From Pelomyxa schiedti (lineage: Eukaryota; Protista; Evosea): a stretch of 33,230 bases of DNA. A program made the position numbers and the translations under genes. Positions 1,617 through 32,560 of this stretch are shown piece after piece (positions within the stretch are counted from its first letter, which is position 1; each line of letters opens with the position of its first letter). Location of the stretch: NCBI GenBank assembly GCA_020536535.1, contig JAHLWZ010000125.1, positions 1 through 33,230 of the forward strand, given 5' to 3'. The notes beneath the pieces were generated by a model. The model did not search any database. It saw only the letters and a program-made list of their open reading frames with translations, and was not told the DNA's origin.

Positions 1617-4600
1617 ATGCGGGGGCGGTTCGGCGGCTCATCGGACGCACCAACGCCAACAAACAAAGCTGTGGGCTACAACGGCGAGATGAAGGACGGC
1701 GTGGTGCACGGCCGAGGGTTCAACAGGTGGGACAACGGCAAGACCTACGAGGGCGAGTGGCGCCACGGCGAGTGCGACGGGTGGGGCGTGACCCGCTGGC
1801 CCGACGGCGAGTGGTTCGAGGGGCTCTACAGGGGCGACCGCCGCACGAGGGGCGCGTGCCACAGCGCAGACGGCGTCTACGTGTTGGACGGGGAGTGGGC
1901 GTGGAACGACGCGGCGCACACTGGCCAGATGCAGGGGTGGGGTGTGCGACGGCAAGTCAAGACGGGAGGCAATGTGACAACTATGGAAACGGTGTATGAG
2001 GGCCAGTGGGAAGAGCACAAGTGGCATGGCTGCGGGACATGGCACTCGCCTGATGGCTCGGGTGACATGTACCATGGCCAGTTTGACCACGGAAAGAGGA
2101 GTGGAACTGGGGGCATGTTGTTTGGGGGCACTGGAGGAGGGAGTTACGTTGGGGAGTGGAAAGATGACGTGTTCCATGGGAGGGGTGTCAGGATTTGGGG
2201 TGATGGGACGAGGTACGAGGGTGCTTGGGAGTGTGGCAAGGAGCATGGGGAAGGCACTAAAACGTGGGCATCTGATGGGACTTCAATCACTGGTGTTTGG
2301 GAGAAAGGTGCCATGGGGTCAGGAACAAAGAGGTGGCCAAATGGTGACGAATTCACTGGCAATTTCACAATGGATGGCGGCTGTGGGGAGGGCACGGCTA
2401 CATTCAGGAGTGGTGGGCCTTCTTCCAAAACAACAGTGACACTTGTTGGAACTTTTAAAGAGAATGTTTTTCAAGAATGTGGTGGAAGAGGCGTGTGTTG
2501 TCAAATTGGATGTGGTGACATTAAGCTGGAGGTTTGTGAATCTCCTCCTTGTTTTTTTCTATTAAACACTTGATGAACAGGAAAAAGTGAGAATGTTGGA
2601 GAGTAAACTTTCAGAGCTCCAAGTCAAACTTGACCAAGAGCAACAAGAGAAAACAGAGGCCATTTCGCAAGCAACAAAATCTTTGAGAGATCTTCAAAAC
2701 AAATGTGAGGAGCAAACAGAATGTGTGTATTTCTGAAAAGCAAAAATCCACACTAATTCCAAAAGTGATGGGTCTGCAGACCAAGCAGTTCATGGATCAA
2801 GAGGAGTGTATGTTTTCCCCTCAATTACAGCATCACCCAACACCCCAAATCCCAGATTTTGAACACACGTTGCAACACCTTCAAAAGGGGATGTGGGGAA
2901 AAACAAACTGTTCTCCAGGAAACACAAACAGCGGGTGTGTGATGGAGGAAGTTTCAATTACACTGGAAAGGCACAACATCACATTTCATGACTCACTTTG
3001 CACGAGGTGCCCTCTTGACAAGGTACCTTCTTGCAAGAACAAAAACACACTTGAAAGACACTCATTCAACACCAAAAGATTGTGAAGATGGAAGTTGAGA
3101 AGCGATTTGGGGTGGATGAAAACCAACAGGTCACCTTTTTGGTTGGGGCCACACGGGAAGTGTCACTCTCTGACACTTCATCAACGCTGTCTCAGTTGTT
3201 CTCTCTTCTCCCACAATCCACCACGTCATCATCAGGTTTCTTTTCCTTTGTTTTGCCATACCATTTCCCACAACAAAGAAAAGGAAAAGAAGGGGAAGCA
3301 AGCAACACAGCAGTGGCACAAGTGAAGGTGAGGATGAAACCAGTGATGACAATCATGGAGTCTGATCTGAGCCATGTTTCCACACTGGGGAGCGGGTGTT
3401 ATGGAACTGTTTACAAGTACATCCACATGCCATCATCAAAGGAAGTTGCTGTGAAAACACTCTTTGAGGTGATTGCATCACCACACAACGTTGAGAGATT
3501 CAGATTGGAAGCTGAGGTTTTCCTTTTCAACTTAGATTCGCCCCAGATCAAACTGACACAAACAAACAAACACACAGATCGTGAGTGGATTGAGGCACCC
3601 CAACATTGTGAAGTGCCTTGGAACGTGCACAACAACAATATCAGGGAAACTGTTGATTGTTTCTGAGCTCATGTGTTGCAGTCTCAGACAGCTTCTGAGG
3701 CATGTGAGGAGTGATTCAATGAAGCAACGACTTGACTTCAAACAATTTGTCTCTATCTCACTTGGTGTTGCCAATGGAATGGACAGCCTCCACAGGTGTG
3801 TAAATCCAACGAAACGAAACCAACAACAACTTATCAGTCGCTCACTCTGACTCGCACCAGGCAGAACATCATGCACCGAGATTTGAGCAGCAACAATGTT
3901 CTTTTTGACTCGAATGGAGTTCCAAAGATTTGTGACTTCGGTGTGTGTTTTTCCATCCCATCCCAATCACAACACAAATATTTTCTTTCTTCTGACACAT
4001 TCCAACCACACCCAACAGGAGTATCCCGCGGAATGCAATCCCTTAAGAGTGGTCCACAAACCATTGTTCCTGGAACAACAGTCCACATGGCACCACAGAT
4101 GTTCACAAACAACTACGCAATCGAGGGTGTGGTCTTCACCCACTTGCTCCTTTAATTTTTACACAATATACACAGGGGATTTGTGGGGGTTTGGAATGCT
4201 CATGGCAGAGATGATCAACGGCGATATTGTTGAATCCACGCTTGACAAGCTCCCTTTACACATGCAAGCAAATTTCTTGGGTGAAGCGATGAGGACCCTT
4301 TCACCTCCTGATGTCGCTGGTTTGCTTGCTTCTCTTTCTCTTTATTTATCGGAATAATATTAATCCAAAATAAATACAAAATCAAGAAATCAATGTATCC
4401 AGAAATAAATGGTTTGATCAAAAAATTTTAATTGAAATTACAATGAGAAGATAAAGAGTGTATAATTTGATGGGACTGCGCTTTCTTTTTTTAACAACAA
4501 ACAAAAGAGGTGAGGAGGCTGTGCTCTGAAGCTGGTGAGTCGGCGATTGCGCACTGTCTCAGCAGGAGGAATGCGGGTCTTGCTGCCGTGAACTATTTCA

Positions 4601-5024
4601 CACACTCTCCTGAATCGCCGCTCTTGACGTCGTCGTGTGGAACAACAACAACAGCATTGCCGACAACAGTGGGTGACCTCATATTCCTTGTTGTTCAGTC
4701 ATGCTTCTCCATTATCGGTGTGTCAGTCTGTGAGTGGTGCTTGTGAGTTCTCACAATTTCACAGAGAGGAACCGGGTTCCGTTCACAGTGATTGTTCAAC
4801 TCCTGCGATGTTGTTGCACATCGGCGGCCATCCACGACATCACCCGAACCCATCATGACGGGCCATTATCACCATGCACATGCACCACCACCACCACCAC
4901 CGTTGTGACTGACGACCAAGTGACTGACTGCATCACGCAGTGGCTGTCATCCCTCTCTCCGCTCATCCTCCTCGCTGCTTCTGCTGTTACCAGTTCCACT
5001 TCTCCACCACCGTCACTCCACTGA
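1617..5024 (+). CDS. K1: MORN repeats - coiled coil - putative ubiquitin-like domain - TKL-type protein kinase (multi-exon)
   Basis: Exon 1 (1617-2531) has MORN repeats (YEGEWxxGxxHGxG). Downstream exons splice in frame at GT-AG introns (e.g. 2532-2580, 2723-2765, 3023-3078). Kinase motifs GSGCYG, VAVK, HRDLSSNN, DFG|VSRG, HMAPQ, DLWGFG. Stop TGA at 5024. Confidence 0.88.
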
Positions 5025-5105
5025 CTGACAGATGCATCATCACCGAGAGGGATTTCACAGAAACCAACAAAGACCCTCTTTGTGTAGACACTTTTCAACG
5101 CACAA

Positions 5106-8100
5106 ATGTGGGGGTGGTTTGCCCGCTCAGCAGCACCTGCAGCCGCGACAACAACCGACGCACCAACGCAACCAAGGTCGTCCACCAACAAAGCCGTGTC
5201 CTACAACGGCGAGACGAAGGACGGCGTGAGGCACGGCCGAGGGCTGGTGAGGTGGGACGACGGCAAGACCTACGAGGGCGAGTGGCACAACGGCGAGTAC
5301 GACGGGTGGGGCGTGGCGCGCTGGCCCGGCGGCGGCTGGTTCGAGGGGCTGTGGAGCGGCGGCGGCTGCACGAGGGGGGCGTACCACTGCAGCAACGGCG
5401 TCGACGTATTTGAGGGGGAATGGGCGTGGAATGCGACGGCGCGCACTTACCAAGTGCAGGGGTGGGGCGTGCAGAGGAGAGTGGTGAGTGGCAGGGGAAC
5501 AGATCGCGATCGTGAGGGCGGTGGGGCAACAACAACTGTGGAAACGGTGTATGAGGGCGAGTGGGAAAAGCACCAGTGGCATGGCTGTGGCACATGGCAC
5601 TCACCTGAGACGGGTGACATGTACCATGGTCAGTTCGATCATGGCAAGAGGAGTGGCACTGGGAGGGCACTGTTTGGGGTCAACGACGGCCAAGGGGGAG
5701 GGAGTTACGTTGGAGCTTGGAAGGATGGCAAGTTCCATGGGAGGGGTGTCAGGATTTGGGAAAATGGTGACAAGTATGAGGGTGATTGGGAGTGTGGGAA
5801 GGAGCACGGCTCAGGTACAAAAACGTGTGCATGTGACGGAACCTCAATGGTGGGTGTTTGGGAGATGGGTGTCATCAGGTCAGGAACAAAGAAGTGGCCA
5901 AATGGTGATGAGTTCACTGGCAATTTCACATTGCCTGGTGGTGGGTGGAAGGGAACGGCCACATTCCCTTGTGATTCACTTTTTTCCAACAGAAAAATCG
6001 CACTTGTTGGAACTGTTCAAGGGAATGTTTTCAAAGAAACAGGTGGTGGAGGCATGTGCTGTCACATTGGATACTGTAACATTCAATTGGAGGTGTGTTT
6101 TACTTTATAAAATTTTCCACATCATTTCTTAATATTTTTTTTTTGTTTATGCAGGAAAAAGTGAAAATGTTAGAAAGTGACAGGAAACAACATAAACACA
6201 CCCTGCAACACATTCAGCATGGAACGTGGGTCCAATCAGATCAAATGGAAAACAGGTGTTTCATGAAAGATGTTGCAGTCACACTAGAAACCAGAAACAT
6301 AACATTTCATGAATCTTTTTGTTCACAGTGCCCTCTTGACAAGGTAGAAACAAAACACCTTCTCAACCACAACAAAAAAAAAAAAAAGGTTGTAAGGATG
6401 ACAGTTGAGAAGCGGTTTGGAGTGGATGAAAACCAACAGGTTGTCTCCCTAGTTGGTGCTACAAAAGAAGAGCCAATCTCTGGGACATTAACACTGTCTC
6501 AGTTGTACTCTCTTCCCCCACATGCCACCACATCACCATCAGGTTTGCTGTTCTTATGTTGGTGCATTCCCTTCCATCCAAAACAAAAAAGGAAAACAAG
6601 TGGAACACGCAATCACAGCAGTGGCACAGTTGAAGGTGAGAATGAAACCTGTGATGGAAATCAAAGAGTCTGAGCTGAGCCACATTTCCACATTGGGACA
6701 TGGGTGTTGGGGAACTGTTTACAGGTGCCTTCACGCCCCATCATCAACAGAAGTTGCTGTGAAGAAACTTTTTGAGGTCATTGCATCAGATCACAACATT
6801 GCGAAATTCAAATTGGAAGCTGAGGTTTTCTTTATTCTTTTGCTGCTAATGCACAAGAAAAACAAATGCTTCAGATCACGAGGGAATTGAGGCATCCCAA
6901 CATTGTGAGGTGCCTTGGGATCTGCACTGGATCTGGTGGATCTGGGCACCTTCAGATTGTTTCTGAGCTCATGTGTTGCAGTCTCAGGCAACTTCTAGAA
7001 CTAATCAAAGGTGAAAAGTCAAAGAAGCAGCTCAGTTTCAGAGAGGTTGCAGCCATTGCACTGGGAGTAGCGAAAGGGATGGACACTCTTCACAGGTATG
7101 AGTGTGTGGTTTATCACGGTTTTGCTCTCCTTTACGCATCACTAAACAGGCAAAATATAATGCACCGAGACTTGAGCAGCAACAATGTACTCTTTGACTC
7201 CAAGGGAACTCCAAAGATTTGTGACTTCGGTATGTGAAGTACTGAAGAAGTTTCGTCTGTTCTCATCTGTGAAAAACAGGTGTATCACGAGGAATGAACA
7301 CACTGGCAATTAGCAATAGAACAATTGGACCAGGAACTCCAATTCACATGGCCCCACAGATGTCAACAAGTCATTACTCAATTCAAGGTTGCGGTTCTCT
7401 CTGTTGCCAACACAAAACTAAGAACACTTAGGAGATATGTGGGGGTTTGGTGTTCTTCTGGCTGAGATGATCAACTGTGACATTGTGGACTCAACCTTTG
7501 ACAAGCTCCCTCTCCGCTCTCAAGTCACTTTCATGGAGGACCAAATGAATAGCCTTTCAGCTCCTGATGTTGAAGGTTTATTTGGCAAGTCACACCAGCG
7601 AGAACTAACCAACAGAAAGAGGTTCGAAGACTGTGCAGGGAGTCAAGTGAATCAGCAGTTGCACACTGCCTCAGCAGGAGGAATGCTTGCCTTGATGTTG
7701 TGAATCGCCGCACACACTCTCCAGATGCACTGGCCCAAGTTCAAATTCTGGCAGCGGCAGACCTCATGTTCCTTGTTGTCCGTTCATGCCTTTCCATCCT
7801 TGGTGTGTGTGACACTCCCGCTTCCAAGCACTTGAACTAAAAATCACCACCACCAAAAAACAGAGAGAGACCGAATTCCGTTCAGTGTGATTGCGTTGTT
7901 GCTCCGTTGTTGTTGCACGTCAGCAACAATCCACGAAATTGAAAGCCAACAGACACCAACAACACGCACAGCATTTGGTACAGTGACAGTGACCGACGAC
8001 CAAGTGACCAACAGCATCGCTCAGTGGTTGTCATCGCTCTCCCCTTTCATTCACCGCCTCGTTGCTGTTTCCACAACAACCAGCACCCCTTCCTTGTCAT

Positions 8101-8108
8101 CACATTGA
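5106..8108 (+). CDS. K2: MORN - UBL-like - TKL kinase, second kinase subtype
   Basis: Starts MWGWF; MORN exon to about 6091. Kinase motifs GHGCWG, VAVK, HRDLSSNN, DFG, IHMAPQ, DMWGFG. I found no frame disruption after splicing by eye. Stop at 8108. Confidence 0.85.
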
Positions 8109-8282
8109 TCAATTGAAAGTGATGAGATAAAAAACTCCACGCCGCCGATCCTTATGTGTTCGTACTGAAGCGAGATAAAGAGGAAACAAAGTGTTTATTT
8201 ATTATAGTTGATTGTTCGTTGAATCACGAGTTAACTCAGGGCCCTGAGCAACCCTCAGAAGTCGGACAACTTCTGGGAATTC

Positions 8283-8354
8283 AATGGCACATGATTCTGT
8301 GCTGTGCGTCCACTGAATACTTGGAATTCATGGGAGACAGGGCTTATAAGCGAC
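8283..8354 (+). repeat. 72-bp non-coding dispersed repeat, copy 1 (copy 2 at 28374-28445)
   Basis: Ungapped alignment, 62/72 identical by manual count. Confidence 0.85.
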
Positions 8355-8859
8355 ACTCTGTGATTCACTTTGTTCCCTCCTTATCTCGTGTTGCAGTGAT
8401 TTTAATAGACGTCACACCCCAGAACAGTGGTGGACTTGTCCTGACACCCAAACAAGACCGTTGCACGACCGTGATCGAGGCCACACACTCCCCGTTTTTC
8501 TCCCTCCAACAACAAAAGCACGGTCACACACGACGTTCAGAACGAAACCCAGCCGCCCCCGAAGTTTTTTTGATGGGTTGTCGGAGTCTTGTTTCAAATC
8601 GGTGAGTGATCAAAAAGGCCGGCGTGTGTGCGGACGCACCAAAAATTCGATTTTGTGCGTCGTTTTTCTTGGTTCCGGAGCCTCTGTGTGTCCTGGAAAC
8701 ACGCTCCCGGGCAGCCCATCGACGGTCTGCCTGGTCTGCGCACTTCCCGCCAACTTGGAGGCCCCAGTGCGGAGAACCAGGCCCACGCACCTTTCACTTT
8801 TGGTGCGTCCACGCACCCACCAAAAATCTATGCGCTTTTGGCAGGAGGAGTGCCCTGGG

Positions 8860-9950
8860 TTGCTGCGCCGTGAAGGAACTCTCCCGAATCGCTGCTCCTA
8901 TTTACATCGGGTGGAACAGCATTGCCGGCAACAGCCATGGTCAGTGACGCTTCTCGAACTTGGGTGTGCGTTTATGGGTAATTGCACAATTACTAACTTT
9001 CACCAGTTTGAGAGAACCCTGATTGCATTATTTTTCTTGCATTCCTGTCAGGCTCCTCTCAACAATGAAGATCCTTTCTCACCTCCTCCCGTTGCTGGTT
9101 TGTTTGCTTCTCTTCATATTTCTCATAAAAATTTCTCGCAGTCACAACAACACAGGTCCGAAGACAGTGCTTTGAAGCTGGGGTTTGGTGAAGCCAGCAA
9201 TTGCACACTGTCTCAGCCAGGAGGAATGCTGGTAATTGATGCTCTGAACCATTTCGCTCACTCTCCCCAAATCGCCGCTCGTTACAGCACTGCCGGAAAC
9301 AGTGGGGACTCATATTCGTTGTTCAGTCACGCCTCTCCATTATCGGTGTGCGTTTGTGCTTGTGAGTGTGCCAAATTGGTGAGAAAGTGAACTGACGATT
9401 GGCCAGAGAGGAACTGGAGCTCCCAGAGGAGCGAGCCTGTGACCAAACAGAGTGTAGTTTTCTGTTGCTGTCACAACAAGCCGGAAAGAACTGTTGATGA
9501 CGTTGTACTCCCTTCTTCCACAACCAACCTTGTCATCAGGTTTGTTCTTCTTCTTGTGTGCCATCCGATCCCATTTCAACACCATAAAGGAAAATTGGGC
9601 ACTGTGAGGAATCCAACACAGCAGTGGCACAAGTGAAATAATACAACTAATAATACAGTCAGTGGTGAAGCAAGTGATCAGAAGCTTGCCTTGATGTCGT
9701 GAATCGCCGCACGCACTCCCCAGATGCCCTTGCCCAAGTGCAAACACCAGGAGCGGTCGATCTCATGCCCCTTGCTGTCCATTTGTGCCTTTCCATCCTT
9801 GGTGTGTGTATCTCCCACTCCCGCTTCCAAGCACTTGAACCAAAAAACACCACCACCAAAAAACAGAGAGAGACCGAATTCCGTTCCGTGTGATTGTGTT
9901 CTTGCTCCGTTGTTGTGTCGGCAACAGTCCACAAATTGTGGGGTTCAAAG
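8860..9950 (+). pseudogene. Mosaic of degenerate kinase-gene fragments (C-lobe exons, linker exon, K2-type 3' end)
   Basis: Fragments match K1/K2 nucleotide sequence (e.g. 9500-9636 linker; 9686-9940 K2-type last two exons) but with no continuous frame. 8860-9130 recurs at about 12050-12320. Confidence 0.75.
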
Positions 9951-10000
9951 TCGGTGTGATCACCGACTTCACCAAAATCAAACATCACGCTTCACAACAA

Positions 10001-11695
10001 ATGTGGGGGTGGTTTGGCGGCACAACAACCAAACCACTACCAACGCCGACAAACGAAGTTGTGGGCTACAATGGTGAGATGAAGGATGGTGTGAGGCACG
10101 GCCGAGGGTTCTGGAGNNNNNNNNNNNNNNNNNNNNNNNNNNNNNNNNNNNNNNNNNNNNNNNNNNNNNNNNNNNNNNNNNNNNNNNNNNNNNNNNNNNN
10201 NNNNNNNNNNNNNNNNTTGCCATACCATTTCCCACAACAAAGAAAAGGAAAAGAAGGGGAAGCAAGCAACACAGCAGTGGCACAAGTGAAGGTGAGGATG
10301 AAACCAGTGATGACAATCATGGAGTCTGATCTGAGCCTTGTTTCCACACTGGGGAGCGGGTGTTATGGAACTGTTTACAAGTACATCCACACGCCATCGT
10401 CAAAGGAAGTTGCCGTGAAAACACTCTTTGAGGTGATTGCATCACCTCACAATGATGAGAGATTCAGATTGGAAGCTGAGGTTTACTTTTTTTTTTTTTG
10501 CTTCAATGTCTGCCTGACAAAACACAAGATCGTGAGTGGATTGAGGCACCCCAACATTGTGAAGTGCCTTGGAACATGCACAACAATATCTGGGAAACTG
10601 TTGATTGTTTCTGAGCTCATGTGTTGCAGTCTCAGACAGCTTCTGAAACAAATCTGAGGTGATCCTTCAAAGAGGCAACTCAGTTTCAGAGAAGTCACAG
10701 CCATTGCCCTTGGAGTTTCAAAAGGAATGGACAGTCTTCACAGGTTTGTGTGCAGTTTTTTATACTCTCTCCTTCACTCACACAGGCAAAATATAATGCA
10801 CCGAGACTTGAGCAGCAACAATGTTCTCTTTGACTCCAGTGGAACACCAAAGATTTGTGACTTTGGTGTGCACAGGTCAGAGGTTGTGTATTCTTATCAG
10901 TTTGAAAACAGGTGGATCACGTGGAATGAACAACACACAAGCAATGAGCAGTGGAGATACAACCATTGGACCAGGAACTCCAATTCACATGGCCCCACAG
11001 ATGTCAACAAATCATTACTCAATTCAAGGTTGTTGCTTGGTGTCCTCTCTAAAGACTAAGAACAGTCTCAGGAGACATGTGGGGATTTGGTGTTCTTCTG
11101 ACAGAGATGATCAACTGTGACATTGTGGACTCAACCTTTGACAAGCTCCCTCTCCGCTCTCAAGCCACTTTCATGGAGGACCAAATGAAGCAACTTTCAG
11201 CTCCTGATGTGGAAGGTTGATTGGCAAGTCACACCAGCGAGAACTAACCAACAGAAAGAGGTTCGAAGACTGTGCGGGGAATCAAGTGAATCGGCAATTG
11301 CACACTGCCTCAGCAGGAGGAATGCTTGCCTTGATGTTGTGAACCGCCGCACACACTCCCCAGATGCACTGGCCCAAGTTCAAACACCAGCAGCGGCAGA
11401 CCTCATGTTCCTTGTTGTCAATTCGTGCCTTTCCATCCTCGGTGAGTGTGTAACTCCCAACTCCCAATCTTGGCACCGCTAAACCAAAAAAACAGAGAGA
11501 GACCGAATTCCGTTCAGTGTGATTGTGTTGTTGCTCCGTTGTTGTTGCACGTCAGCAACAATCCACGAAATTCAGAGCCAAGTGACCGACGACCAAGTGA
11601 CCAACAGCGTCGCTCAGTGGTTGTCATCGCTCTCCCCTTTCATTCACCGCCTCGCTGCTGTTTCCACAACAACCAACACCCCTTCCTCGTCGTGA
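10001..11695 (+). pseudogene. K3: MORN-kinase copy with in-frame TGA; chimeric kinase; spans an assembly gap
   Basis: MWGWF start, then N gap, then kinase exons. In-frame TGA at 10655-10657 with the frame continuing into GDPSKRQLSFREV. The two sides of the gap may belong to different copies. Confidence 0.75.
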
Positions 11696-11719
11696 TCACA
11701 CTGATCAATGAACTTTTAG

Positions 11720-12770: not shown

Positions 12771-12798
12771 ACATGCTCATCAGGGGCGATGAAGTGGT

Positions 12799-18064: not shown

Positions 18065-18338
18065 TGCCAGAAGGGCAGACGAACTAACACCCCTTTGCTC
18101 TCGTTCTCTTGTTCTTGCTCTCTTGCTCTCGGTCTTTCTCTCTTGCTCTCACTCTTGCGCACCTACACCACTCCACTGGGCTCCTACGTGCCACTCTGCC
18201 ACATTCCCAACCTACACTCACTCCACTTCTCCATGATGTTCCCTGGCAATGCTTGTTTCTTTTTGCCAGGTAACTTGGCGTCATCACAGAGGACACACCC
18301 AAGTCGGTTTTTCTCTGGCCACCAAAGACACTAAAAAA

Positions 18339-20688: not shown

Positions 20689-23210
20689 ATGCGGAGAGAG
20701 TCACCAAAAACAAGGGAAGAAACAACAGTAGCAGTAACCATGACTAACACAAACAGTGCAACATCGACGAATGCACCGCCGCCTGAACCAAAAATTAAGT
20801 ACCAGGGGGAGAGGAAGGACGGCATGCAACATGGACGAGGGGTCCAAAGCTGGGCAAATGGCACTACATACGAGGGTGAGTGGCACAGCGGCAAGCAGGA
20901 TGGGTGGGGTTTGTACCACTGGCCCGACGGCAGTTGGTTCGAAGGACTGCAAAGGAGCAGTCGCCGTCAGAGGGGTACATACCACAGCGCAAACGGTGTG
21001 GATGAGTGGGAGGGAGAATGGGAAGACAAAGGAAAGAGAATGCAAATGCAGGGATGGGGTGTGCAACGGAGAGTGGTGAAGAAGATAGGAGCAAGCAATA
21101 CTGGTGACAGTCGTGGTGAAACAGTGGCCGTGGAGACTGTGTATGAGGGCCAGTGGGATGGGTACAAGTGGCATGGTAACGGAACATGGAAATCACCTGC
21201 TACTGGTGATATCTACCATGGTCAGTTTGATCATGGAAAGAGGAGTGGCACCGGAAGGATGCTGTTTGGTAGTGACAACAGTGAAGGGGATGGAGCAGGG
21301 AGTTACGTCGGGGAGTGGAAGGATGACATGTTCCACGGGAGGGGCGTCAGAATTTGGGGTGATGGCACGATGTATGAGGGTGATTGGGAGTGTGGGAAGG
21401 AGCATGGGGCAGGCACAAAAACGTGGGCACGTGAAGGTACTTCGATTGGTGGTGTTTGGAAGACAGGTGTGATCATGTCAGGCACAAAGAAGTGGGCAAA
21501 TGGTGATGAATTCACTGGAACGTTCACAATGAATGGTTCTTGTGGAGAAGGCATGGCCACATTCAAGTGGGGTTTGCCTTTCAACCGTCTTGTTGGGTGC
21601 TGCAAAAACAATGTTTTCCAAGAAACACAACGTGGTGGTGGAAGAGGTCTTTGCTGTGGGATTGGATGTAGTGATCTTCATCTGGAGGTGTTATACCAGA
21701 TTTTTCACTACTTTTGTTTCCTTCAGTGGGGTGGGAAGGAAACTGCACCAAAAGAGAACAAAGAGGCACAAAGTATTTTATTCATCTTGGAATGGATGGA
21801 TACATTTGGGTGTGTTTGTGTTGAGGTTTTTTTGTATATTTGGAAAGAAATGAGGTGAACTCGGTGTGCATTTATAAAGGATTCCAAAGTCAAAGGAAAG
21901 GTCTTGGGTATCTCGATGATCTTTCTGTGAACTTGATTTCCGAACTTGGTAAGTGATGACTCAGCCTCTGAGTCTCCAGTCTCGAGTCTTGCGAGTGCGC
22001 CTTGCGCACAGTTTGCCTGTGTGTTCGCAGAATCACACACTTTAAGTGAACCCTTACTTATATTTCTGTTATGCCAGGAAAAAGAGGGAAATAACCAAGG
22101 AAGTGGAACCACACCATTTTTTCATGCTCTCCCTGAACTGGAAAAGGCCTTCACACTGGCAACACAGTTCCAAACCCAGATAAAAAAAGCATCATCTGAG
22201 TTTGTTCTGCTTGAGAAGTCACTTGCCAACATCAATGAAAGCCTCCAAGGTGCCACACAACACAACCAGTCACTGGAATCACACTTGAGGGAACTTGTTG
22301 CACTGAAAGATGGACTGGGAAATACATTTGAAGAAACATGTGAAGAGTGCAAGAAGGCTCTTGGGCAGACTCTGACAGAGCAGAGCAGTGAGTCAGAGAT
22401 TCAGCAGTGCTCCAGGAACATCTCAGAGTTGACAAAGAAGTTGTTGGAAATCAAGCCAGTGACCTCTGTGACTGAAGGCAGTTTCCTGGAGCTGGTTCCG
22501 TCACCACCAAAAGGTATCCTCCCAAACAACACAAAAGCAAGGTAATAGAGTCCCCAAACAGGATATGATGACTTGATGCAACCTTTGGTTTTGTCTGCGC
22601 AGCAACAACCCCCAGATGTTCTGTCCACCACAGTGGCACCTTTCAGTCTGTTGGCTCCAGTCACAGACACATTGGTGCTTCTGCGAGGATGCCAGTTTTC
22701 AGAGTGCACGAAGCTTGTGGACCAGCACACCATGCTGTCAAAGGAACTTTCTGAGCAGATCACATTGGGCCACAACCTCCACAACCAAATCGAGAAAATG
22801 CAGGGAGCATGCACAGACCTGATGAGGGAACACAAGTCCAAGTGGATGTTGATGCGGGGACTGGAGGGTGATGAGCGGTTCATCCAGTGCCCTGATGTGC
22901 AGTCACTTCTCTCTCCATTGCTCCCTCAGGCTCAGCAGGCCATTGTCGACCTCATGGTGTCCAAGGCTGCATCACTTTCACTTGCACAGCAACACATCAC
23001 CTTAGCGGAGGTTTGCATTGAGTGTGAAGAGAAGCCACCCAATGTTATTCTGCACCCCTGTGGCCACGCTGTTCTGTGCTCTGAGGTTTCTTCCTTTTAT
23101 TTTTCCCAATTTGCAACCGACCAACCACACACACACAGTGCGCAGCCACAATGAGAAAGTGTCCTCAATGCAGAGCCCCAATCACTCAGAAGCAAATCAA
23201 GCAATTGTAA
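20689..23210 (+). CDS. RING-B: kinase-class MORN exon - coiled coil - RING E3
   Basis: Exon 1 ends CCGIGCSDLHLE|GT. Coiled-coil/RING exons from about 22078. Stops at 22543-22548 lie in a 48-nt intron (22514-22561). RING ends CPQCRAPITQKQIKQL*. The junction at 21690-22078 is uncertain. Confidence 0.75.
22333..22967. repeat. Near-identical inverted segment shared with about 26203-26835
   Basis: About 630 bp with roughly ten differences by eye, including an identical intron. ORF-track entries 22401-22883(-) and 26285-26767(+) differ at 2 residues. Confidence 0.9.
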
Positions 23211-23365
23211 CTCATTGGACAATTTATTATTCTCGTGCTGGCCACGATTGCATGTGGGGAAAGGCTCTCAGATTACCTGAATTTTGAAGGGATACACACG
23301 AGTGATACACACAAAAAAAGAGTCCGACGTCGTTTGTTTCACCAAAATAAAGTTGTTGACTTATG

Positions 23366-25848
23366 TCACCCACTGTTCCCTGTACTTGTTTTTCGTTGTA
23401 TTTTGGTGCGACACTGTGGACACTTCCTCCTTGTTGCTGCACACTGTTGTTGTTGTTATACAGTGGGTTGGACTTAGAGAAGTGGGAATCCATACATTAG
23501 AGCACAACACAAGGTGGCCACAAGGGTGCAACAGCACGTTTGGTGGCCTCTCGTCACACTCCATGCACAACTTGTTGCTGTGGTCCAGGGAGGAAGTGCA
23601 TCCAGGGAGGGTGGAGCTTGAAGTAGTTTGGCAATGTTCTTGTTGTGGGTTGTTTGGCTGGTTGAAGTGAGATGCCAAGGCACTGGACTTGGATACCATG
23701 ATGTTAACGATGCTCTGCTGGGCCTGTGGAAGTTGCTTAGAGAGCGTCGACCACACACTGGGGCACACAATGAACTGCTCATCACCCTCCAGCCCCCGCA
23801 TGAGCATCCACTTGGAATTGTGTTCCTGGTTCAGCTCGGAACACAGTCCCTGAAGTGCCTTGATTTGTGTGTGGAGGTTGTTGCCAAGCATGACTTGCTC
23901 AGAGAGCTCTTTGGATAATACTTGGTGTTGGTTAGAAAGTTTGGTGCACTCAGAAAAAGAGAAATCTTTCAGTTGAGCAAGTGGGGCTAAGAGAGGTCCC
24001 AATTGCAGTGAGCTTGAGAAGATAGCATCATCATCCTGTGGAGGTTGTGACAAAGGTTTCAGCAAGTTTTCACTGTCTATAAGTTGGTTAGAATAACAAT
24101 CTGTTGGCTTCTTGGGGGAAAGGGAACCGCACCTGGAAACGTAATTAATGGTGAAAGTGGGTTACTTTCTGCTGTCCCTCCTGTATGACGTGGCTTGATT
24201 CCCAACATCTTCTTTGTCAACTCTGAGATGTTCCTGGAGCACTGCTGAATCTCTGACTCACTGCTCTGGACGGTCAATGTCTCACCAAGAGCTTTCTTGC
24301 ACACCTCATGTGTGTCACTGACCCTCTTGGACAGAGTGTCCTTCAATGCTGTGAGTTTCCTCAGGTGTGTTGCCAGCACATCGTTGTGTTGTGTGACCTC
24401 TTCGAGTCTCAAGTTCATTTTTACCTGTGATTTCTCAACCAACACAAAGTCAACTGCTGATTGCTTCAACTGTGACTGGAACTGTGTTGTCACTGTGAAA
24501 GCCTTGTTCAGTTCAGTGAGTACAGTGGTTTCTGCTTTACCAGTATCAGGGCCCTCCAAAAGTTTACCCTTTCCCTCTTCACAGAGTTGCAGTGTCTTCT
24601 GTTGGAGTTGTTGCTCCAGATTTTGTATTTTCTGGGACATGTAGTGCAACTGATTATTGTTTCTTGCATTGATTTGCTGGAGGGAAAGGTGATGAGGTTT
24701 TCCTCAAGGTGAAGTACGAAGCCTTACCTGCCACTTTGCTCTAGCAGCGCTCATTTCCCCTTGCAGTCTTGCTTCTATCTCACTTTTTTCTTTTTCCAGT
24801 GCCTGTTGGGAAAAGGTAAAAAAAAAAAGAAAATTGGATGTCTCCACACCTGAATCTGCTGATGGTGCTCAATCTGTGGCAGTGAGGAACCCATGTTGTG
24901 TGTATTAGTGGTGCTTGATCCTTCATGGAATGTGTTGCCCTGGAGTGTACCTTTCAACGGGGGGGTGTGTTTCCCACAGGAGAGAATGAGAGCGCCAACA
25001 CCACAACAGGACCAGCCATCATCACGCATTGTACCCTGTGGTGACTGCGTGAAAGTCCCTTCGAACTGGTCACCATTTGGCCATCTCCTCGTTCCCTTCT
25101 TTGGCACACCCATTTCCCACAACCCCGTGAATGACGACCCATCCCTGCACCACCTCCTCATTCCTTCCCCATGTTCCTTCCCATCTTTCCACTGGCCCTC
25201 ATACCTGTCGCCGTTTGCCCACAGCCTCACACCCCTCCCATTGAACGTGTCGTCCTTCCACTCCCCAACGTAGCTCCCTCCTCCACCCCCTTCACAGCTG
25301 CTGTCACCGCCAAACAGCATCCTCCCAGTGCCGCTCCTCTTTCCGTGGTCAAACTGACCACAGTAGATGTCGCCCGAGCCATCATGTGCCCTCCACGTTC
25401 CGCTCCCGTTCCACGCGTTTCCGTCCCACTCGCCCTCATACACGGTGATCCCGTGTATCCCCCTCCTCTCGACCCCCCACCCCTGCATCACGTACACCTC
25501 CCCCGCCGCGTCCCACACCCAGTCCCCGTCGAGCACGGCGTCCCCCGCCCGGCCGGCGCCGCCGCGGCCGTCGTGCAGCGCCCCCCTGGTCCTCCGGTCG
25601 TCCCGCCACAGGCCCTCGTACCACAGGCCGCTGGCGGCGAAGTACACGCCCCAGCCGTCGCGCTTGCCGTCGTGCCACTCGCCGTCGTAGGTGCCGCCGT
25701 CGGGCCAGCTGTGGGCGCCGCGGCCGTGCATCTCGCCGTCCTTCCACTCGCCGTCGTAGGTGCTCCCGTTCGGCCACTTGCACGTGCCCCTGCCGTTCGG
25801 TTTGTTGTTGACGAGCCGCCCGGTGTATGAGAGGACGGTCTGAGACAT
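23366..25848 (-). CDS. RING-C: MORN - coiled coil - RING E3
   Basis: MSQTVLSYTG start, MORN exon, in-frame small exon ALEKEKSEIEARLQ, coiled coil, then RING CMECx11CGHx3CSN|Cx6CPQCR. Confidence 0.82.
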
Positions 25849-25886
25849 TGATGGTGGATCGGGTTGTTAGTTGTTGGCGTTTATTG

Positions 25887-28306
25887 TTATTGTTTGATCT
25901 GTTTCTGGCTGATTGGGGCTCTGCATTGAGGACACTTTCTCATTGCTGAGGCACACTGTGTGTGCTGTTGGTTGGGAGAAAAATAAAAGGAGGAGGATAA
26001 CCTCAGAGCACAGAAGAACGTGTCCACAGGGGTGCAGAATGACGTTGGGTGGCCTCTCATCACATTCAACGCAAACCTCCACTGATGCCGTTGTTGTAGT
26101 GAAGGTTTGCTGTGCGGCCCTGCGACCTGGAAGAGTTGAGGTCTTGCTTGGTTGCTCACTCCTCTGGGATGAAGAGGAAAGTGCAGCAGCAAGTGAGAAT
26201 GCCTTGGACACAACGAGGTCAACAATGGCCTGCTGAGCCTGAGGGAGCAACAGAGAGAGAAGTGACTGCACATCAGGGCACTGCATGAACCGCTCATCAC
26301 CCTCCAGTCCACGCATCAACATCCACTTGGACTTGTGTTCCCTCACCAGGTCTGTGCATGCTCCCTGCATTTTCTCGATTTGGTTGTGGAGGTTGTGGCC
26401 CAATGTGATCTGCTCAGACAGTTCCTTTGACAGCATGGTGTGCTGGTCCACAAGCTTCGTGCACTCTGAAAACTGGCATCCTCGCAGAAGCACCAATGTG
26501 TCTGTGACTGGAGCCAACAGACTGAAAGGTGCCACTGTGGTGGACAGAACATCTGGGGGTTGTTGCTGCGCAGACAAAACCAAAGGTTGCATCAAGTCAT
26601 CATATCCTGTTTGGGGACTCTATTACCTTGCTTTTGTGTTGTTTGGGAGGATACCTTTTGGTGGTGACGGAACCAGCTCCAGGAAACTGCCTTCAGTCAC
26701 AGAGGTCACTGGCTTGATTTCCAACAACTTCTTTGTCAACTCTGAGATGTTCCTGGAGCACTGCTGAATCTCTGACTCACTGCTCTGATCTGTCAGAGTC
26801 TGCCCAAGAGCCTTCTTGCACTCTTCACATGTTTCATCAAGTTTCTTTCCCAGTCCATCCTTCAGTGCGAGAAGTTCCCTCAAGCGTGATGCCAGTGACT
26901 GGTTGTGTTGTGTGGCACCTTGGAGGCTCTGAATGATGGTGGCCAGTGACTTCTCAAGCAAAACAAACTCGGTTGACGCTTTTTTTATCTGGGTTTTGAA
27001 CAGTGTTGCCAGTGTGAAAGCCTTTTCCAGTTCAGTTAGGGCACAAAAGTTTAATGGTGTTGTTCCACTTCCCGTCCAAGGACAAATGCAGGCTTCATCT
27101 TCATATTTTTGGAGTTGTTGTTGCTTTTTCTGGAGATTTTGTTCAAGCTCTTGAATTCTCTCCTTCAATTGATTGAGTTGTTCACCATGTTCCTTGTTGT
27201 TTTTCTTTTTGCAGAAAAGGATCATTGAATGGAATGGGTAAGGGAGTACACACTTCAATCTGGTTTTTGTATTTCAACTGCTGCTGCCAAGATGACCCCA
27301 TTTGATGTTCTACCAAAGAAACTTGTCCATTCTCAGCACCATCCACTGTTGTTTGTTGGAAGGTGTTGTTGTTGAGTAATCCCCTCAGCTTAATCAGAGT
27401 ATTATTTCCTGAGGGGAGTGTCACAACACCCTCACCACAACACTCCCATCCATCCCTCACGCCACATTGTGATGACAGTGTGAAGATGCCTTCGAACTGG
27501 TCACCATTTGGCCACTTCCTCGTTCCCTTCTTTGGCACACCCATTTCCCACAATCCACTGAATGATGACCCATCCCTGCACCACCTCTTCATTCCTTCTC
27601 CATGTTCCTTCCCATCTTTCCACTGGCCCTCATACCTGTCGCCGTTTGCCCACAGCCTGATACCCTTCCCATGAAACTTGTCCTTCTGAAACTCCCCAAC
27701 GTAACTCCCTCCTCCTTGGCTGTTGTCACCAAACAGTATCCTCCCAGTGCCACTCCAATTTCCTTGATCAAACTGCCCAGAGTAGATGTCACCAGTCTCT
27801 CGTGACAACCACGTTCCTAGGCCGTGATAGTTGTGCCCCTTCCACTCACCTGCATACACCACGCCGAGTCCCGTCTCCACACCCCAATTCGTCATCTGAT
27901 TCACCCCAAACTGCCCGTTCCACCGCCACGAACCGTCCATCTCGTACCCTGCCTCACTGTGCAGTATCCCCTTTGCCCAGTGGTTGTCCCTCCACAGCCC
28001 CTTGTACCAGCTCCCGTCGGGCTGGCGGCACACACCCCACCCGTCCTTCCTGCCCTCGCGCCACTCTCCCTCGTAGGTCAGCCCGTGCGGGCCTCTGAAC
28101 ACCCCTCGGCCGTGCATCCTGCCGTGCTTCCACTCGCCTTCGTACGTGGCCCCCAAGCAAAAGTCGTTGGAGAACGACTTGGACAGCCACTTGCACGTTC
28201 CTGTGCCATCACGGAAGCCATCGACCAGCCGACCAGTGTACACTTGCTCAGCGATCGACGTGTCGTCGACTACCAGTGCCACTGTCATGGAGATCGCTTT
28301 TGCCAT
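25887..28306 (-). CDS. RING-D: MORN - coiled coil - RING E3
   Basis: ATG at 28306 (MAKAISM), MORN exon to about 27260, coiled coil, then RING CVECx11CGHx3CSE|Cx6CPQCR. Stop at 25887. Confidence 0.82.
28287..28306 (+). repeat. 20-bp direct repeat ATGGAGATCGCTTTTGCCAT (second copy 29675-29694)
   Basis: Exact match read directly. It corresponds to the first 20 nt of the RING-D CDS on the minus strand. Confidence 0.95.
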
Positions 28307-28373
28307 CAATCGAGGCTAAGTTAAAGGCCTGTCAACAAAGCGGACTTCTTTACACATTAACTTGAAACCAAAG

Positions 28374-28445
28374 AATGTCACATGATGCTGTGCCGTGTGT
28401 CCACTGAATACTTTGAATATATGGGAGCCCGGGCTTATAAGTGAC
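28374..28445 (+). repeat. 72-bp non-coding dispersed repeat, copy 2
   Basis: 62/72 identical to 8283-8354. Confidence 0.85.
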
Positions 28446-28500
28446 CACGAATGAAACACATAACAAACAAAGGAAAATCCCTTTTTTTTAAAACAATTAT

Positions 28501-29277
28501 CTACAGGGTGGATTTTGGTCCGCTTATTTCCTCCGAACCGGTGGACCTTCTCTTCTTCGGCGTCGGGGAGACGGCTATAGACGAAGCGTCGTCGTCTCGT
28601 TCGGTTTCCGCGAGCCTGAAATCTCGCTTCATCCTGTATATCTGCAAAGCGAGCTTCCTGGTGTGGGCTGGACAAGACACGACAACCTCGAACTGTGAGG
28701 TCTCCCTCGAAAGGTCTCCATGCACGATCGGGAGGTTCGACATGAACGTCAGCGCCGCCAGCCCGTCGGTGCAGTCGGCACACAGGTCGACCGGCTCCAA
28801 CCCGACGTAGATGTTCCTCCCCCGGCACACCCTGCAGACCCCCCCGTGGTAGCTGCGCCCAGTGCCGGTCACCGCCCACTCGAACGCGTCGTTGCATCCC
28901 CTGTATCTCTGGACGTTGTTCGATACGCGCCTGACGACCTCGACGACGACCCAGCAGAAGTTCCACGCGACTTCGTAGAGGGCGACCAGCGCCGGCGAAG
29001 CGGGGGGCGCTGGGAAATCGGCGAGGTCGCGCGTGTTCCTGAAGGCCGCCGCCGCGAGGACGTCCTTGGGGATGCCCGAGGCCTCCGACGAGAGGGACAT
29101 CACGAGAGAGGCCCCGTGTTCGTCGACGATGGGGCATTTTTTCTGGATGGCCCTGCATCCCGCGTCGAGGGCTCCGGGGAGGTCGAGCTGCAGCGACCTC
29201 TTGGCTTCGCGGATGCCCCTGGCGTAATCGTCGAACGAGATGTTCCAATCATTAATTGATATTTTTTTCGCCGACAT
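28501..29277 (-). CDS. Intronless 258-aa orphan protein with CxxC-x14-CxxC motif and NLS-like PKKRR
   Basis: ATG-started ORF preceded by TATATAAATAAAAG, with GC3-rich codons. Motifs CRVC...CADC and C-terminal PTPKKRR. No family recognised. Confidence 0.65.
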   Translation of the reverse strand: MSAKKISINDWNISFDDYARGIREAKRSLQLDLPGALDAGCRAIQKKCPIVDEHGASLVMSLSSEASGIPKDVLAAAAFRNTRDLADFPAPPASPALVALYEVAWNFCWVVVEVVRRVSNNVQRYRGCNDAFEWAVTGTGRSYHGGVCRVCRGRNIYVGLEPVDLCADCTDGLAALTFMSNLPIVHGDLSRETSQFEVVVSCPAHTRKLALQIYRMKRDFRLAETERDDDASSIAVSPTPKKRRSTGSEEISGPKSTL

Positions 29278-29515
29278 CTTTTATTTATATAGGTAGATCT
29301 TTCTTTTCTTTTTTGCCCTTTCTGTCTTTTCGCCGAGTCCTCATTCGCTCGGAAAATCGGCATTTTGGATTTTTTTTCGGCTCCGCGACGCTCATTCGTC
29401 GGGTCCCGGTGAATAGCGATCGCTTTCCTGGGCCTTCCACTGGTCTTTCAAGAAATGTAGAGGAGGAAAAAAAAAACGCACGGATCCCCCGAACGACTTC
29501 GCAACGGACGCCGTG

Positions 29516-29674
29516 ATGCCGAAAAGGCAGCCTTTCCAACGTGGAGGATTCGTCTCTGACGTCGAACGGGTCAACAATGCCAGCCCGACGCTGACGAACC
29601 CGCTGTCGGGACGTATAGAGAACGGGCACTTTATGAGGTGCGACGCCTGCCACGAACCTCTTTGCCACCGGTGG
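29516..29674 (+). other. Truncated GC-rich ORF divergent from the orphan gene
   Basis: MPKRQPFQ...RCDACHEPLCHRW runs into the 20-bp repeat, where composition changes. Confidence 0.35.
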
Positions 29675-29694
29675 ATGGAGATCGCTTTTGCCAT

Positions 29695-30540
29695 TGTTAA
29701 TGTTCAGGTGCATTTCGGTGAGATTCTGGTGATGACTGCTAGTGATAAGTTGGAGCACCACAATGTCAACTGCTTGGCAGAAACTGAAGAGTCTGATCAC
29801 TGGGAAACCTTCTCCAACAACGATACACAAGCCGATCGGAGCTTTATGTGCTTGACACGGCATTTACAAGGGGCTTCCAGCTTATTTCTGGCATGTATCT
29901 TGTGAATGTGTTGCCAATTATCGGATCACTTTCTCACCAGTTCGACAGATTCCCTTGCTGAAAGCAACAAAAATTATGTTCGTGGTACAATGGTCCACAT
30001 GGCACCGCAGATATTCACAAACAACTACACAATTGAGGGTGTGGCATTTCTTCCTTCTTTATTACTGACTCCTGAGTACAACAACAGGGGATTTGTGGGG
30101 CTTTGGAATGGCAGAGATGATCAGTGGTGATATTGTCATTGACTCCCCACTTGACAAGCTTCCTCTTAGTTCACAAGCAAATTTCTTTGGGGAACAAATG
30201 CGGACACTTCCACCTCACGTTTCTGGTTTTCTTGTGTCTCTTTATTTCGAATATTATTTTAATTAATTAGTTACTAGTATAATAACTATTTATTATATAG
30301 TATATAGTATTAATAATATTATTATAATACTATTACTTAATAATATTAATAATTATTAATAATAAGTTGCAGTGTATAATTTAATTCTTACACCACAAAA
30401 GAGCTGAAGAGGCTGTGCTGAATCCGGCGAGTCGGCGATTGCACACTGTCTCAGCAGAAGGAATGCCGGTCTTGCTGCCGTGAACTATTTCACACACTCT
30501 CCTAAATCGCTGTGGAACAACAGCATTGCGAACTATTTCG
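29695..30540 (+). pseudogene. Degenerate kinase 3' half
   Basis: Remnants GTMVHMAPQIFTNNYTIE, DLWGFG, LDKLPL and AIAHCLSRRN, with deletions and frameshifts. No intact N-lobe. Confidence 0.8.
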
Positions 30541-30808
30541 CACTGCAGACATATTCCCCAAATGAGGTCACCAATTAAATTTATAATTATTATCACCCCA
30601 CTCAACAATAGTAGTTCCCACTCGATTCCAGAGAGACTGACGAATTAAGTGCCTCTCCATTCCACATTCCGCTCCCCTCCGACATTTTCTGAGTCTCTGA
30701 AGGGGATTCTAACGCCACGTCACTTTTATGGTAAAAAACGACTTGGTCAGGCAGTCCTTCAGTACACCAACTTCCTGTGTGCCTGTCCAACACATAAACA
30801 AAAAAAGA

Positions 30809-32560
30809 ATGTGGGGGTGGTTGGCCAGCTCACAAAAAAAAGAAACAACAACACCCACAGCTGATGCACCAACGGCGACAAGTAAAACGCCAACGCCAAC
30901 AAACAAAGTAGTGGGCTACAATGGCGACATGAAGGACGGCGTGAAGCACGGCCGAGGGTTCATGAGGGGAGCCGACGGCGGCGACACCTACGAGGGCGAC
31001 TGGCACAAGAACAAGTGCGACGGGTGGGGTGTGTACCGCTGGGCAAACGGCAATTGGTTCGAGGGGCTGCTCAGGGGTGGTCACTGCCAAAGGGGCACAT
31101 ACCACAGCGAAAATGGTGTTGATGAATGGGAGGGGGAATGGAGCACCACAGAAAAGGAGATGCGAATGCAGGGTTGGGGCGCAAGGAGAGCCAAGAAGAT
31201 AGTAACAAATCCCAGTGACAATCGTGAGACCGTGACTCTGGAGACTGTGTATGCTGGTGAGTGGGACGGGGACAAGTACCATGGCTGTGGCACATGGCAC
31301 TCACCAGCAGGTGACATCTACCATGGTCAGTTTGATCACGGAAAGATTAGTGGCACAGGAAGAGCACTGTTTGGTGACAAAAGCCAAGGGGGTGGAGGAG
31401 GGAGTTACGTTGGGGAGTGGAGGGATGCTAAGTTCCATGGGAGGGGTGTCAGGATCTGGGGAGATGGGACGAGATACGAGGGAGATTGGGAGTGTGGGAA
31501 GGAGCATGGGGCAGGCACGAAAACGTGGGCATGTGATGGGACTTCAATTGGTGGTGTTTGGGAAATGGGTGTGATTAAGTCAGGAACAAAGAGGTGGCCA
31601 AATGGTGATGAGTTCACTGGAAAATTCACAATGAATGGTTGTTGTGGTGAAGGAACAGCCACATTCAGAAGTGGTGGGGCATCTACAACCAATACAGTGA
31701 CACTTGTTGGGACTTTCAAAAAGAACCTTTTCCAGGAAACAAAATGTGGTGGTGGTGGAGGAATGTGCTGCAACATTGGATATGGTGACATTCAATTGCA
31801 GGTGTGTACAAGATTAGAAGCCATCATTACTGAATGTTTTATGTAGGAAAAAGTGAGGATGTTGCAAGACACATTTGAGAAACAAACAATAGACAAAGAC
31901 ACTCAAAAAGAACGTAGGTGGTTTGAGTCTCTTGTTGTCTCATTCCTTCCCAACCACAGTGATGAACAACCAAATAAAAGAGTTGAAAGATAAAATGGAG
32001 CAACTGTCAAACAATCTTCACGAACAACTGGAACAACAAACAGAATGTGTGTAGTATGACCCTTCCTTTGCTTGTTGTATTTTCATTGAATCTTACAAAT
32101 CCCCAAAAAGTGATGCAAATACAAACCAAGGAGTTCAAGGAGCAAGAAGAATGTGTGTGAACTTTTTTGTTTTTTTTTTTGCTCATTCCCACGCAAGACA
32201 TTGAACACACCTTGCAACACATTCAACAGGGAATGTGGGTCAAATCAAATCAAATGGAAAACAAGTGCGTCATGAAAGAAGTGATGGTAACACTAGAAAC
32301 AAGCAACATCACATTTCATGAATCCTTTTGTTCACAGTGCCCTATTGACAAGGTAAAAACAACAAACCAACTCACCTACAGGGCGGGCACAACACCCAAA
32401 AAGGTTGTCAGGATGGAAGTTGAGAGGCGATTTGGAGTCGATGAAAGTCAGCAGGTTGTATCCCTTGTAGTTGGACAACAGGAATTGTCACTCTCTGACA
32501 CTTCATCAACTCTGTCTCAGGTTCTTCTCTCGCAAGCAACATCATCAGGTTTGCTGTTTG
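30809..32560 (+). CDS. K5: kinase-class MORN - coiled coil - UBL-like gene, truncated by gap
   Basis: MWGWL start; MORN exon ends DIQLQ|GT. Coiled-coil exons 31847-31913, 31960-32046, 32111-32152, then VVRMEVERRFGVDESQQ. The kinase portion is not visible. Confidence 0.78.

Follow-up and report, generated by a model that had tools for sequence, protein, structure and literature searches.

The window analysed here is an entire contig of Pelomyxa schiedti (JAHLWZ010000125.1; 33,230 bp), an anaerobic archamoeba with a single-cell-derived assembly. We found on it ten related, clustered genes that join an array of MORN repeats to either of two catalytic back ends, a protein kinase or a RING E3 ubiquitin ligase; pieces have passed between the two classes (in g5 and g6). 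The cluster probably represents a large family, found so far only in P. schiedti, in which the MORN array would serve as a targeting or partner-binding module on recombining modular enzymes. An earlier note on this DNA had recognised the common front end and the two alternative outputs, in which it was right, and had proposed that the genes form an immune-like recognition array, which we weigh below.

MORN-exon starts were located by tblastn with one MORN exon, single modules and two annotated proteins. Nine starts were detected, at 1617+, 5106+, 10001+ (39 codons before an assembly gap), 16374/16446−, 18249+, 20629/20689+, 25848−, 28288− and 30809+, the eight full ones having E values between 1e-83 and 1e-101. 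Together with g0, which has no MORN exon because the window begins within it, they make up the ten family genes. Five starts are kinase-class (g1, g2, g3, g4 and g9) and four are RING-class (g5–g8); g1, g2 and g4 are complete with kinase, and the gap-cut g3 and g9 were classed by MORN or linker type alone. The positions and the five-to-four division agree with those of the earlier note, which had not counted g0. A custom spliced protein-to-genome aligner reproduced the annotated exons of P0036 and P0002 exactly and was therefore applied to the copies without a full-length annotated model.

Kinase-class genes encode, in order, the MORN array, a short coil, a small beta-rich domain, a TKL kinase and a helical tail. 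Spliced alignment of g1 (1617–5021, + strand) recovered the MORN and coil exons, the linker domain, the TKL kinase and the helical tail with no stop or frameshift; its kinase and tail exons are those of P0265. Exact exon mapping identified g2 (5106–8105, +) as P0036 (847 amino acids, 10 exons, introns of 44–62 bp), with Pfam matches to MORN and Pkinase. The third complete copy, g4 (12775–16374, −), aligned without a stop and is 81% identical to g1 at the nucleotide level over 1.6 kb. In g9 (30809–32547, +), spliced alignment recovered the MORN exon, coil exons and linker up to a gap at 32561–32660, which cuts the gene before any kinase exon. The leftmost gene, g0 (2–1397, +), is a kinase-class gene of which only the 3′ part (linker, kinase N-lobe and tail) lies in the window, identified by spliced alignment to residues 377–623 of P0036 and a tblastn match to the tail at 1191–1397; it is 90% identical to g1 in nucleotides and contains a gap at 1005–1104. 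The GxGxxG motif, the VAVK lysine, the alpha-C glutamate, HRDLSSNN and DFG were present in g0–g4, and P0036 matched Pkinase/PK_Tyr_Ser-Thr at 136 bits. The nearest solved kinase sequences were CTR1, JAK and FGFR, which suggests a TKL/TK-like kinase; we describe it as a Ser/Thr kinase of TKL type.

RING-class genes carry the MORN array, a coiled coil of ~340 amino acids and an IAP-type C3HC4 RING at the C-terminus. Exon mapping identified g5 (18249–20576, +) as P0001, g7 (23369–25848, −) as P0006 (758 amino acids) and g8 (25890–28288, −) as P0002 (752 amino acids, 4 exons); g6 (20689–23204, +) was recovered by spliced alignment with no stops. The P0002 RING matched zf-C3HC4_3 (PF13920) at 46.1 bits against a cut-off of 27. 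All four RINGs follow the pattern C-x2-C...PCGH...C-x2-C...CPQCR, in which the linchpin arginine noted earlier is retained in every copy and aligns with the CPICR of cIAP1/2. The RING sequence is nearest to those of cIAP1/2 and XIAP (cIAP1, E 2e-9), and it is divided by a phase-0 intron ahead of the last 22–25 codons. All eight zinc ligands and the C-x2-C-R ending were kept in 15 of 15 RING-class genes examined, namely g5–g8 and 11 more. The MORN array itself has ~11–13 tandem repeats of the 23-residue type (YxGxWxxGxxxGxG) and scored 47–109 bits with Pfam MORN (PF02493; cut-off 22.5) in P0036, in P0002 and in each of the eight full MORN exons. MORN, Pkinase and zf-C3HC4_3 were all recovered in the Pfam check that the earlier note had suggested; searched individually against Pfam, the linker, tail and coiled coil gave sub-threshold noise only.

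Predicted structures followed the same order of parts. For P0002, an AlphaFold model that drew on 25 paralogues (mean pLDDT 77) places a beta-hairpin sheet at residues 1–312 (pLDDT >90), long helices at 334–673, a disordered stretch and then the RING. The P0036 model has a MORN sheet at 30–320 (pLDDT ~90), a small domain at 347–432, the kinase and a confident helical tail at 701–837. The small domain is predicted as beta-beta-beta-beta-alpha-beta-beta (pLDDT 70–81), and the beta-beta-alpha-beta-beta order of its second half resembles a ubiquitin-type fold; the domain may be ubiquitin-like. Its one long Foldseek alignment, to a chain of a RAS/RAF complex, had an rmsd of 24 Å and was given little weight. 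Matches to MORN1 and to kinases dominated the Foldseek search with the full kinase-class model, and the top matches were MORN1 of T. brucei, T. gondii and P. falciparum (E 2e-17), junctophilin-1/2, RSP1/10 and MORN4. MORN1 proteins are protein-interaction modules that dimerise via their C-terminal repeats (PMC7725318).

The nucleotide comparisons show that segments have been repeatedly exchanged between copies and between both classes. Three genes (g3, g5 and g6) are mosaics with sharp breakpoints. The MORN-exon start of g3 (10001–10116, +; tblastn), which encodes 39 codons beginning MWGWFGG, ends at a gap, and its kinase and tail follow at 10217–11692 (+; spliced alignment and sliding identity). 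This part is 93–99% g1/g0-like in nucleotides up to about residue 555 of P0036 and then 90–97% g2-like. The switch lies within only 26 identical bases, and an in-frame TGA (10655–10657) is located there, which makes g3 a probable pseudogene. In g5, the first part of the MORN exon is kinase-class-like (83–87% to g9) and the last part is 92–99% identical to g8. Trees of the MORN exon agree: g5 groups with kinase-class copies in the first part, and in the last part the classes separate cleanly except for g6, which falls in the kinase clade. Synonymous divergence (dS) between g5 and g8 was 0.82 in the N-terminal part of MORN, 0.23 in its C-terminal part and 0.17 in the coiled coil.

The third mosaic, g6, is a chimera between the classes, with a kinase-class MORN exon and a RING-class coiled coil and RING. 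Its coiled coil is 95% identical to that of g8 in nucleotides, and dS between the two genes is 0.06–0.12 in the coiled coil and 1.1 to 2.8 in MORN. The kinase-class MORN homology stops at the exon end (21687–21691) and the RING-class homology starts at 22099, with ~400 bp of unique sequence between the two parts. Splicing from a donor at 21688 to an acceptor at 22077 would hold the reading frame across the join, with an unusual intron of 390 bp and the RING-class part beginning at about 22078. We interpret g6 as exon shuffling caught in the act. The cluster is a clean natural case of exon and domain shuffling, in which one putative binding module has been traded back and forth between kinase and ubiquitin-ligase lineages with the breakpoints still visible.

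Self-comparison of the window resolved tandem units, with ~85 bp separating g1 from g2, and two inverted blocks. Matches of 83% between g4 and g9 and of 86–89% between g5 and g8 accompany the layout g4(−)|g5(+) g6(+) facing g7(−) g8(−)|g9(+), which looks like an old inverted duplication. At the inversion breakpoint, an orphan linker-exon fragment (12593–12760, +; tblastn) abuts the inverted 3′ end of g4, and an open reading frame (ORF) at 12641–12940 runs through linker sequence and then antisense g4 tail. The arrangement shows spread by tandem and inverted duplication accompanied by gene decay, and the birth-and-death evolution that the earlier note had described, with clustering and decay products, was borne out. 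Its pseudogenes, chimeras and inversions proved real in the form of one probable pseudogene, gene fragments, mosaics and inversions; the 255-amino-acid ORF at 9890–10657 proved to be an artefact, as it reads across the placeholder Ns at 10117–10216.

At the genome level, P. schiedti has at least 58 annotated members of the family within the searched length range, of which 23 contain a RING and 17 a kinase, the remainder being MORN-only or partial models. A coiled coil plus RING query against 1.84 billion representatives returned ~45 proteins covering the coiled coil; all 11 whose source was seen were from P. schiedti, and lower-ranked matches covered the RING only. The kinase-tail query likewise had matches in P. 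schiedti only; outside this species, the sequence searches detected relatives of neither the coiled coil nor the kinase tail. Within it, the coiled-coil-RING cassette has other front ends as well, namely NT-C2, C1, ankyrin and Kelch. Carriers of the cassette with alternative front ends were P0126, P0131, P0132, P0009 and P0129 and a locus at 5447–9337 of contig L008; in P0129 the cassette is fused to polyketide-synthase domains, probably through a merged gene call.

We next consider selection, estimated as pairwise Nei-Gojobori ratios of nonsynonymous to synonymous substitution (dN/dS) for each domain as a whole. Within the window, dN/dS was 0.15–0.59 across domains. Among 15 RING-class genes from ten contigs, medians were 0.34–0.45 and no value exceeded 0.72. 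Overall, dN/dS for MORN was 0.15–0.72, a span no different from that of the kinase, the coiled coil and the RING. Even between the closely related coiled coils of g6 and g8, the ratio was 0.30–0.48 at a dS of 0.06–0.12. Mean identity among the 15 RING-class genes was 56% in the N-terminal part of MORN, 63% in its C-terminal part, 49–51% in the coiled coil and 65% in the RING. These values indicate moderate purifying selection on every domain and a MORN array that, as a whole, is not excessively variable. The earlier note had made excess variability or positive selection in the MORN exons the touchstone of its proposal, and at the domain level neither was found. Variation inside the array is uneven: the first five repeats and an indel-rich loop have an entropy of 1.55–2.2 bits versus ~1.1 elsewhere.

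We propose that the MORN array, predicted to form an elongated beta-hairpin sheet ahead of either back end, acts as a targeting or partner-binding module, possibly a dimerising one, that would bring the enzyme to a protein or membrane site. In the RING class, the coiled coil would pair two RINGs, a pairing on which the activity of IAP-type RINGs depends, so that the bound target could be ubiquitinated. Kinase-class proteins would act at sites of this kind too, by phosphorylating their targets. Given that the same coiled-coil-RING cassette sits on NT-C2, C1, ankyrin and Kelch front ends, we regard a regulatory function at membranes, the cell cortex or endomembranes as most likely, in preference to dedicated pathogen sensing. 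Since bacteria and archaea live free in the cytoplasm of this amoeba (PMC10579272), the family is also a reasonable first candidate set for the management of internal partners or membranes.

Several observations weigh against this proposal. A dN/dS of 0.3–0.5 together with the more variable N-terminal MORN half is looser than is typical of housekeeping genes, and both features would be compatible with diversifying recognition as well. A coupled function, which targeting by MORN does not require, is hinted at by the head-to-head kinase and RING pairs described below. On the catalytic side, APQ replaces APE in every kinase copy (HMAPQM), and the RING in the P0002 model is predicted with low confidence (pLDDT 50–65). 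Finally, the assembly derives from amplified single cells and has scaffold gaps, and some joins need checking.

Four head-to-head arrangements of a kinase-class gene with a RING-class gene were found. Two are within the window, g4|g5 (~1.9 kb apart) and g8|g9 (~2.5 kb apart), and two are on contigs L001 and L002, where the divergent starts are 194 bp apart. Other arrangements were a divergent RING|RING pair (L005) and a tandem kinase-then-RING order (L003). The paired kinase and E3 members suspected in the earlier note thus have some footing, but the pairs have spread by duplication, so their number is only suggestive. The boldest form of the idea is that such pairs are co-regulated from shared short promoters, reach the same target through exchanged MORN arrays and couple phosphorylation to ubiquitination, thereby tagging, controlling or destroying intracellular bacteria, archaea or viruses, symbionts included. 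We give it only a slim chance; if true, it would be an undescribed cell-autonomous immunity built on MORN repeats.

A more general form of this idea, an innate-immune or symbiont-surveillance array in which variable MORN surfaces bind microbial or viral ligands and a paired kinase and E3 modify the target, we consider unlikely. The birth-and-death clustering with its pseudogenes and recombination, the restriction of the family to this lineage, the four head-to-head places, the resident bacteria and archaea and the greater variability of the N-terminal MORN half and the indel-rich loop within MORN would all suit such an array. MORN2 has reportedly been linked to LC3-associated phagocytosis of bacteria. 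However, no domain has a dN/dS near or above 1 (maximum 0.72), and MORN is better conserved than the coiled coil. Pfam scans of the genes detected no death-fold or TIR domain and no NTPase switch; neither NACHT nor NB-ARC was found in any gene, and the likeness to NLRs that the earlier note had drawn fails on this point. The output cassette, moreover, is shared with lipid- or membrane-type front ends (NT-C2 and C1), and the head-to-head pairs are not independent of one another. Of the immune-sensor argument, clustering, turnover and recombination stand, whereas domain-level selection, MORN variability and the NTPase switch do not.

A slightly less likely possibility is that the cluster is mostly evolutionary debris, with a few working genes amid duplicates drifting to pseudogenes and with the chimeras g3 and g6 as dead by-products of unequal recombination. 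Decay is present. The TGA of g3 falls exactly at its recombination switch, and besides the linker fragment at the inversion breakpoint there are two further orphans: a kinase-class tail-exon fragment left over from a lost gene, at 9684–9916 (+; tblastn to P0036 residues 728–783; blastn 82–85% to the g2 and g3 tails), and a kinase C-lobe and tail fragment at 29915–30512 (+; tblastn). Additional decayed kinase-class tail sequence was seen at ~9186–9350, and these tail-exon pieces in the spacers imply that more dead copies are buried there. In addition, g6 needs its atypical 390-bp intron, no model of 414–1,318 amino acids for it was among the proteins listed for this contig, and dN/dS is fairly high at 0.3–0.5. 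Nevertheless, in seven of the ten genes the exons are long and open and both splice sites and catalytic residues are intact, every zinc ligand is kept in all 15 RING-class genes, and dN/dS lies clearly below 1 even in pairs as close as the g6 and g8 coiled coils.

The remaining concern is the assembly, which was obtained by single-cell genomics from seven micromanipulated cells (PMC8887013). Three runs of 100 N occur (1005–1104, 10117–10216 and 32561–32660), and each conceals gene sequence. About 600 bp of g0 is absent at the first, and everything in g9 beyond the linker exon at the third. The left flank of the second gap ends at MORN codon 39 and its right flank starts 17 bp into the intron preceding the first kinase-domain exon; if both flanks belong to one gene, comparison with g1 puts the absent sequence at ~1.5 kb (~290 MORN codons, coil exons and linker exons), and the 100 Ns are therefore a placeholder and not continuous sequence. 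The 570 bp after the third gap, which form the contig end (32661–33230), are a direct copy, 97.5–100% identical, of 17460–18064 in the spacer upstream of g5, and reflect either a further g5-like unit beyond the contig or a wrong scaffold join. It is nonetheless improbable that some of the mosaics and inversions arose by mis-joining of repeats 75–99% identical, as this origin and these gaps might suggest, because the mosaics differ from their presumed parents (g3 is 93–99% identical to g1 and 90–97% to g2), the g3 switch lies in just 26 identical bases, the g6 join passes through ~400 bp of unique sequence, and similar mosaics and head-to-head pairs occur on independent contigs.

We then compared the family with the closest known systems. 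A literature search yielded no description of a MORN-coiled-coil-RING protein and no paper combining MORN repeat, E3 ubiquitin ligase and RING domain, and the P. schiedti papers searched contained no mention of MORN. Both the MORN-coiled-coil-RING arrangement and the passage of MORN exons between kinase and ligase lineages therefore appear to be undescribed, in line with the novelty claimed in the earlier note; the claim does not extend to the kinase class, since MORN combined with a TKL kinase was already known. The separate parts are familiar, as is the logic of a repeat domain joined to a coiled coil and a RING. TRIM- and LRSAM1-style E3s likewise join a module for recognition to a dimerising coiled coil and a RING, with clustered expansion. 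In TRIM proteins, however, the RING is N-terminal and is followed by a B-box, a coiled coil and SPRY, whereas the P. schiedti RING comes last and B-box and SPRY are absent; the LRR and SAM of LRSAM1 are also absent from the RING class.

MORN1, junctophilins and radial-spoke proteins have the repeat and the fold in common with the P. schiedti arrays, but they lack a catalytic domain, whereas the P. schiedti MORN fronts a kinase or an E3 ligase. IAP-type E3s (cIAP1/2, XIAP and ML-IAP) share the identical ligand spacing, the PCGH core, the CPxCR ending and the short C-terminal tail; unlike them, the RING class has no BIR, CARD or UBA, and its RING follows a family-specific coiled coil and MORN.

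For the kinase class, PfTKL1 and PfTKL3 carry MORN motifs N-terminal to a TKL-group kinase (PMC2933843). These proteins have two weak MORN motifs and a SAM domain, whereas no SAM domain was found by Pfam in P0036 and the intervening domain of the kinase class is predicted to be beta-rich. In P0116 of Paratrimastix pyriformis, a MORN array precedes the kinase, as it does in P. schiedti, with a kinase identity of only 26%. Neither P0116 nor the PfTKLs have the linker domain or helical tail of the P. schiedti kinase class, and in neither case has a clustered and expanded family, accompanied by a RING-bearing sister class, been described. We also considered P0055 as an orthologue and rejected it, as the kinase comes first and MORN last and the contig gene is one uninterrupted ORF beside a kinase-RHS protein. 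A single-ORF gene at 410–5190 of contig L010 (GCA_964604835.1) encodes a protein of this reverse order, kinase and then MORN array, beside a kinase with RHS-repeat matches.

MORN-repeat gene families have also been described in amoebal giant viruses (PMC5753266). Proteins of Pandoravirus and protists that combine MORN with an F-box (P0066 and several others) join MORN to the ubiquitin system, as here. The F-box is, however, a cullin-ligase adaptor and not a ligase domain, and identity to these proteins is <30% and confined to MORN. Compared with the Pandoravirus proteins, the P. schiedti genes are cellular and have spliceosomal introns of 43–65 bp. A viral or transposon origin of the family was rejected on the GT-AG boundaries of these introns and the lack of close viral relatives. 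NLR arrays share genomic clustering, birth-and-death turnover and recombination with the P. schiedti cluster, but they have an NTPase switch and a positively selected recognition domain, whereas the genes described here lack the switch and their MORN is not excessively variable at the domain level.

Annotated proteins from this contig that appeared in the searches were P0001, P0002, P0006, P0033, P0036 and P0265, and the cluster shows that public product names can mismatch the domains present and that several gene models are split or fused. The 5′ mini-exons of the P0001 model (16733–18134) look spurious. P0033 wrongly fuses the orphan kinase fragment at 29915–30512 to g9. The NCBI annotation splits g1, with P0265 covering the kinase half only and the MORN exon left unjoined. 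Like g6, g4 had no model of 414–1,318 amino acids among the proteins listed for the contig. The product names "TIR protein", "2-isopropylmalate synthase" and "phosphatidylinositol phosphate kinase" disagree with the domains we found.

The spacers yielded few further features. Scans for tRNAs and Rfam families gave no matches in the whole window, and Pfam gave none for spacer ORFs in 8156–9390, 16823–17170 and 28316–29863. The stretch at 28316–29905 has 54% G+C and long ORFs that overlap one another on the two strands, the longest of 310 amino acids, and a 258-amino-acid ORF within it (28501–29277) had no homologue among 5.8 billion proteins. Given these Pfam and homology results, the spacer ORFs, including those of this stretch, are probably not genes. 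Two long spacers have a 279-bp segment in common (8865–9132 and 12053–12324; 84% identity). A repeat of ~70–100 bp, which matched no tRNA or Rfam family, was also observed in spacers beside family genes, at 8243–8354 and 28374–28445 in the window, at 9683–9857 of contig L002 and at 3458–3557 of contig L009. The L002 copy lies inside the 194-bp divergent promoter and is 98% identical to the window copy.

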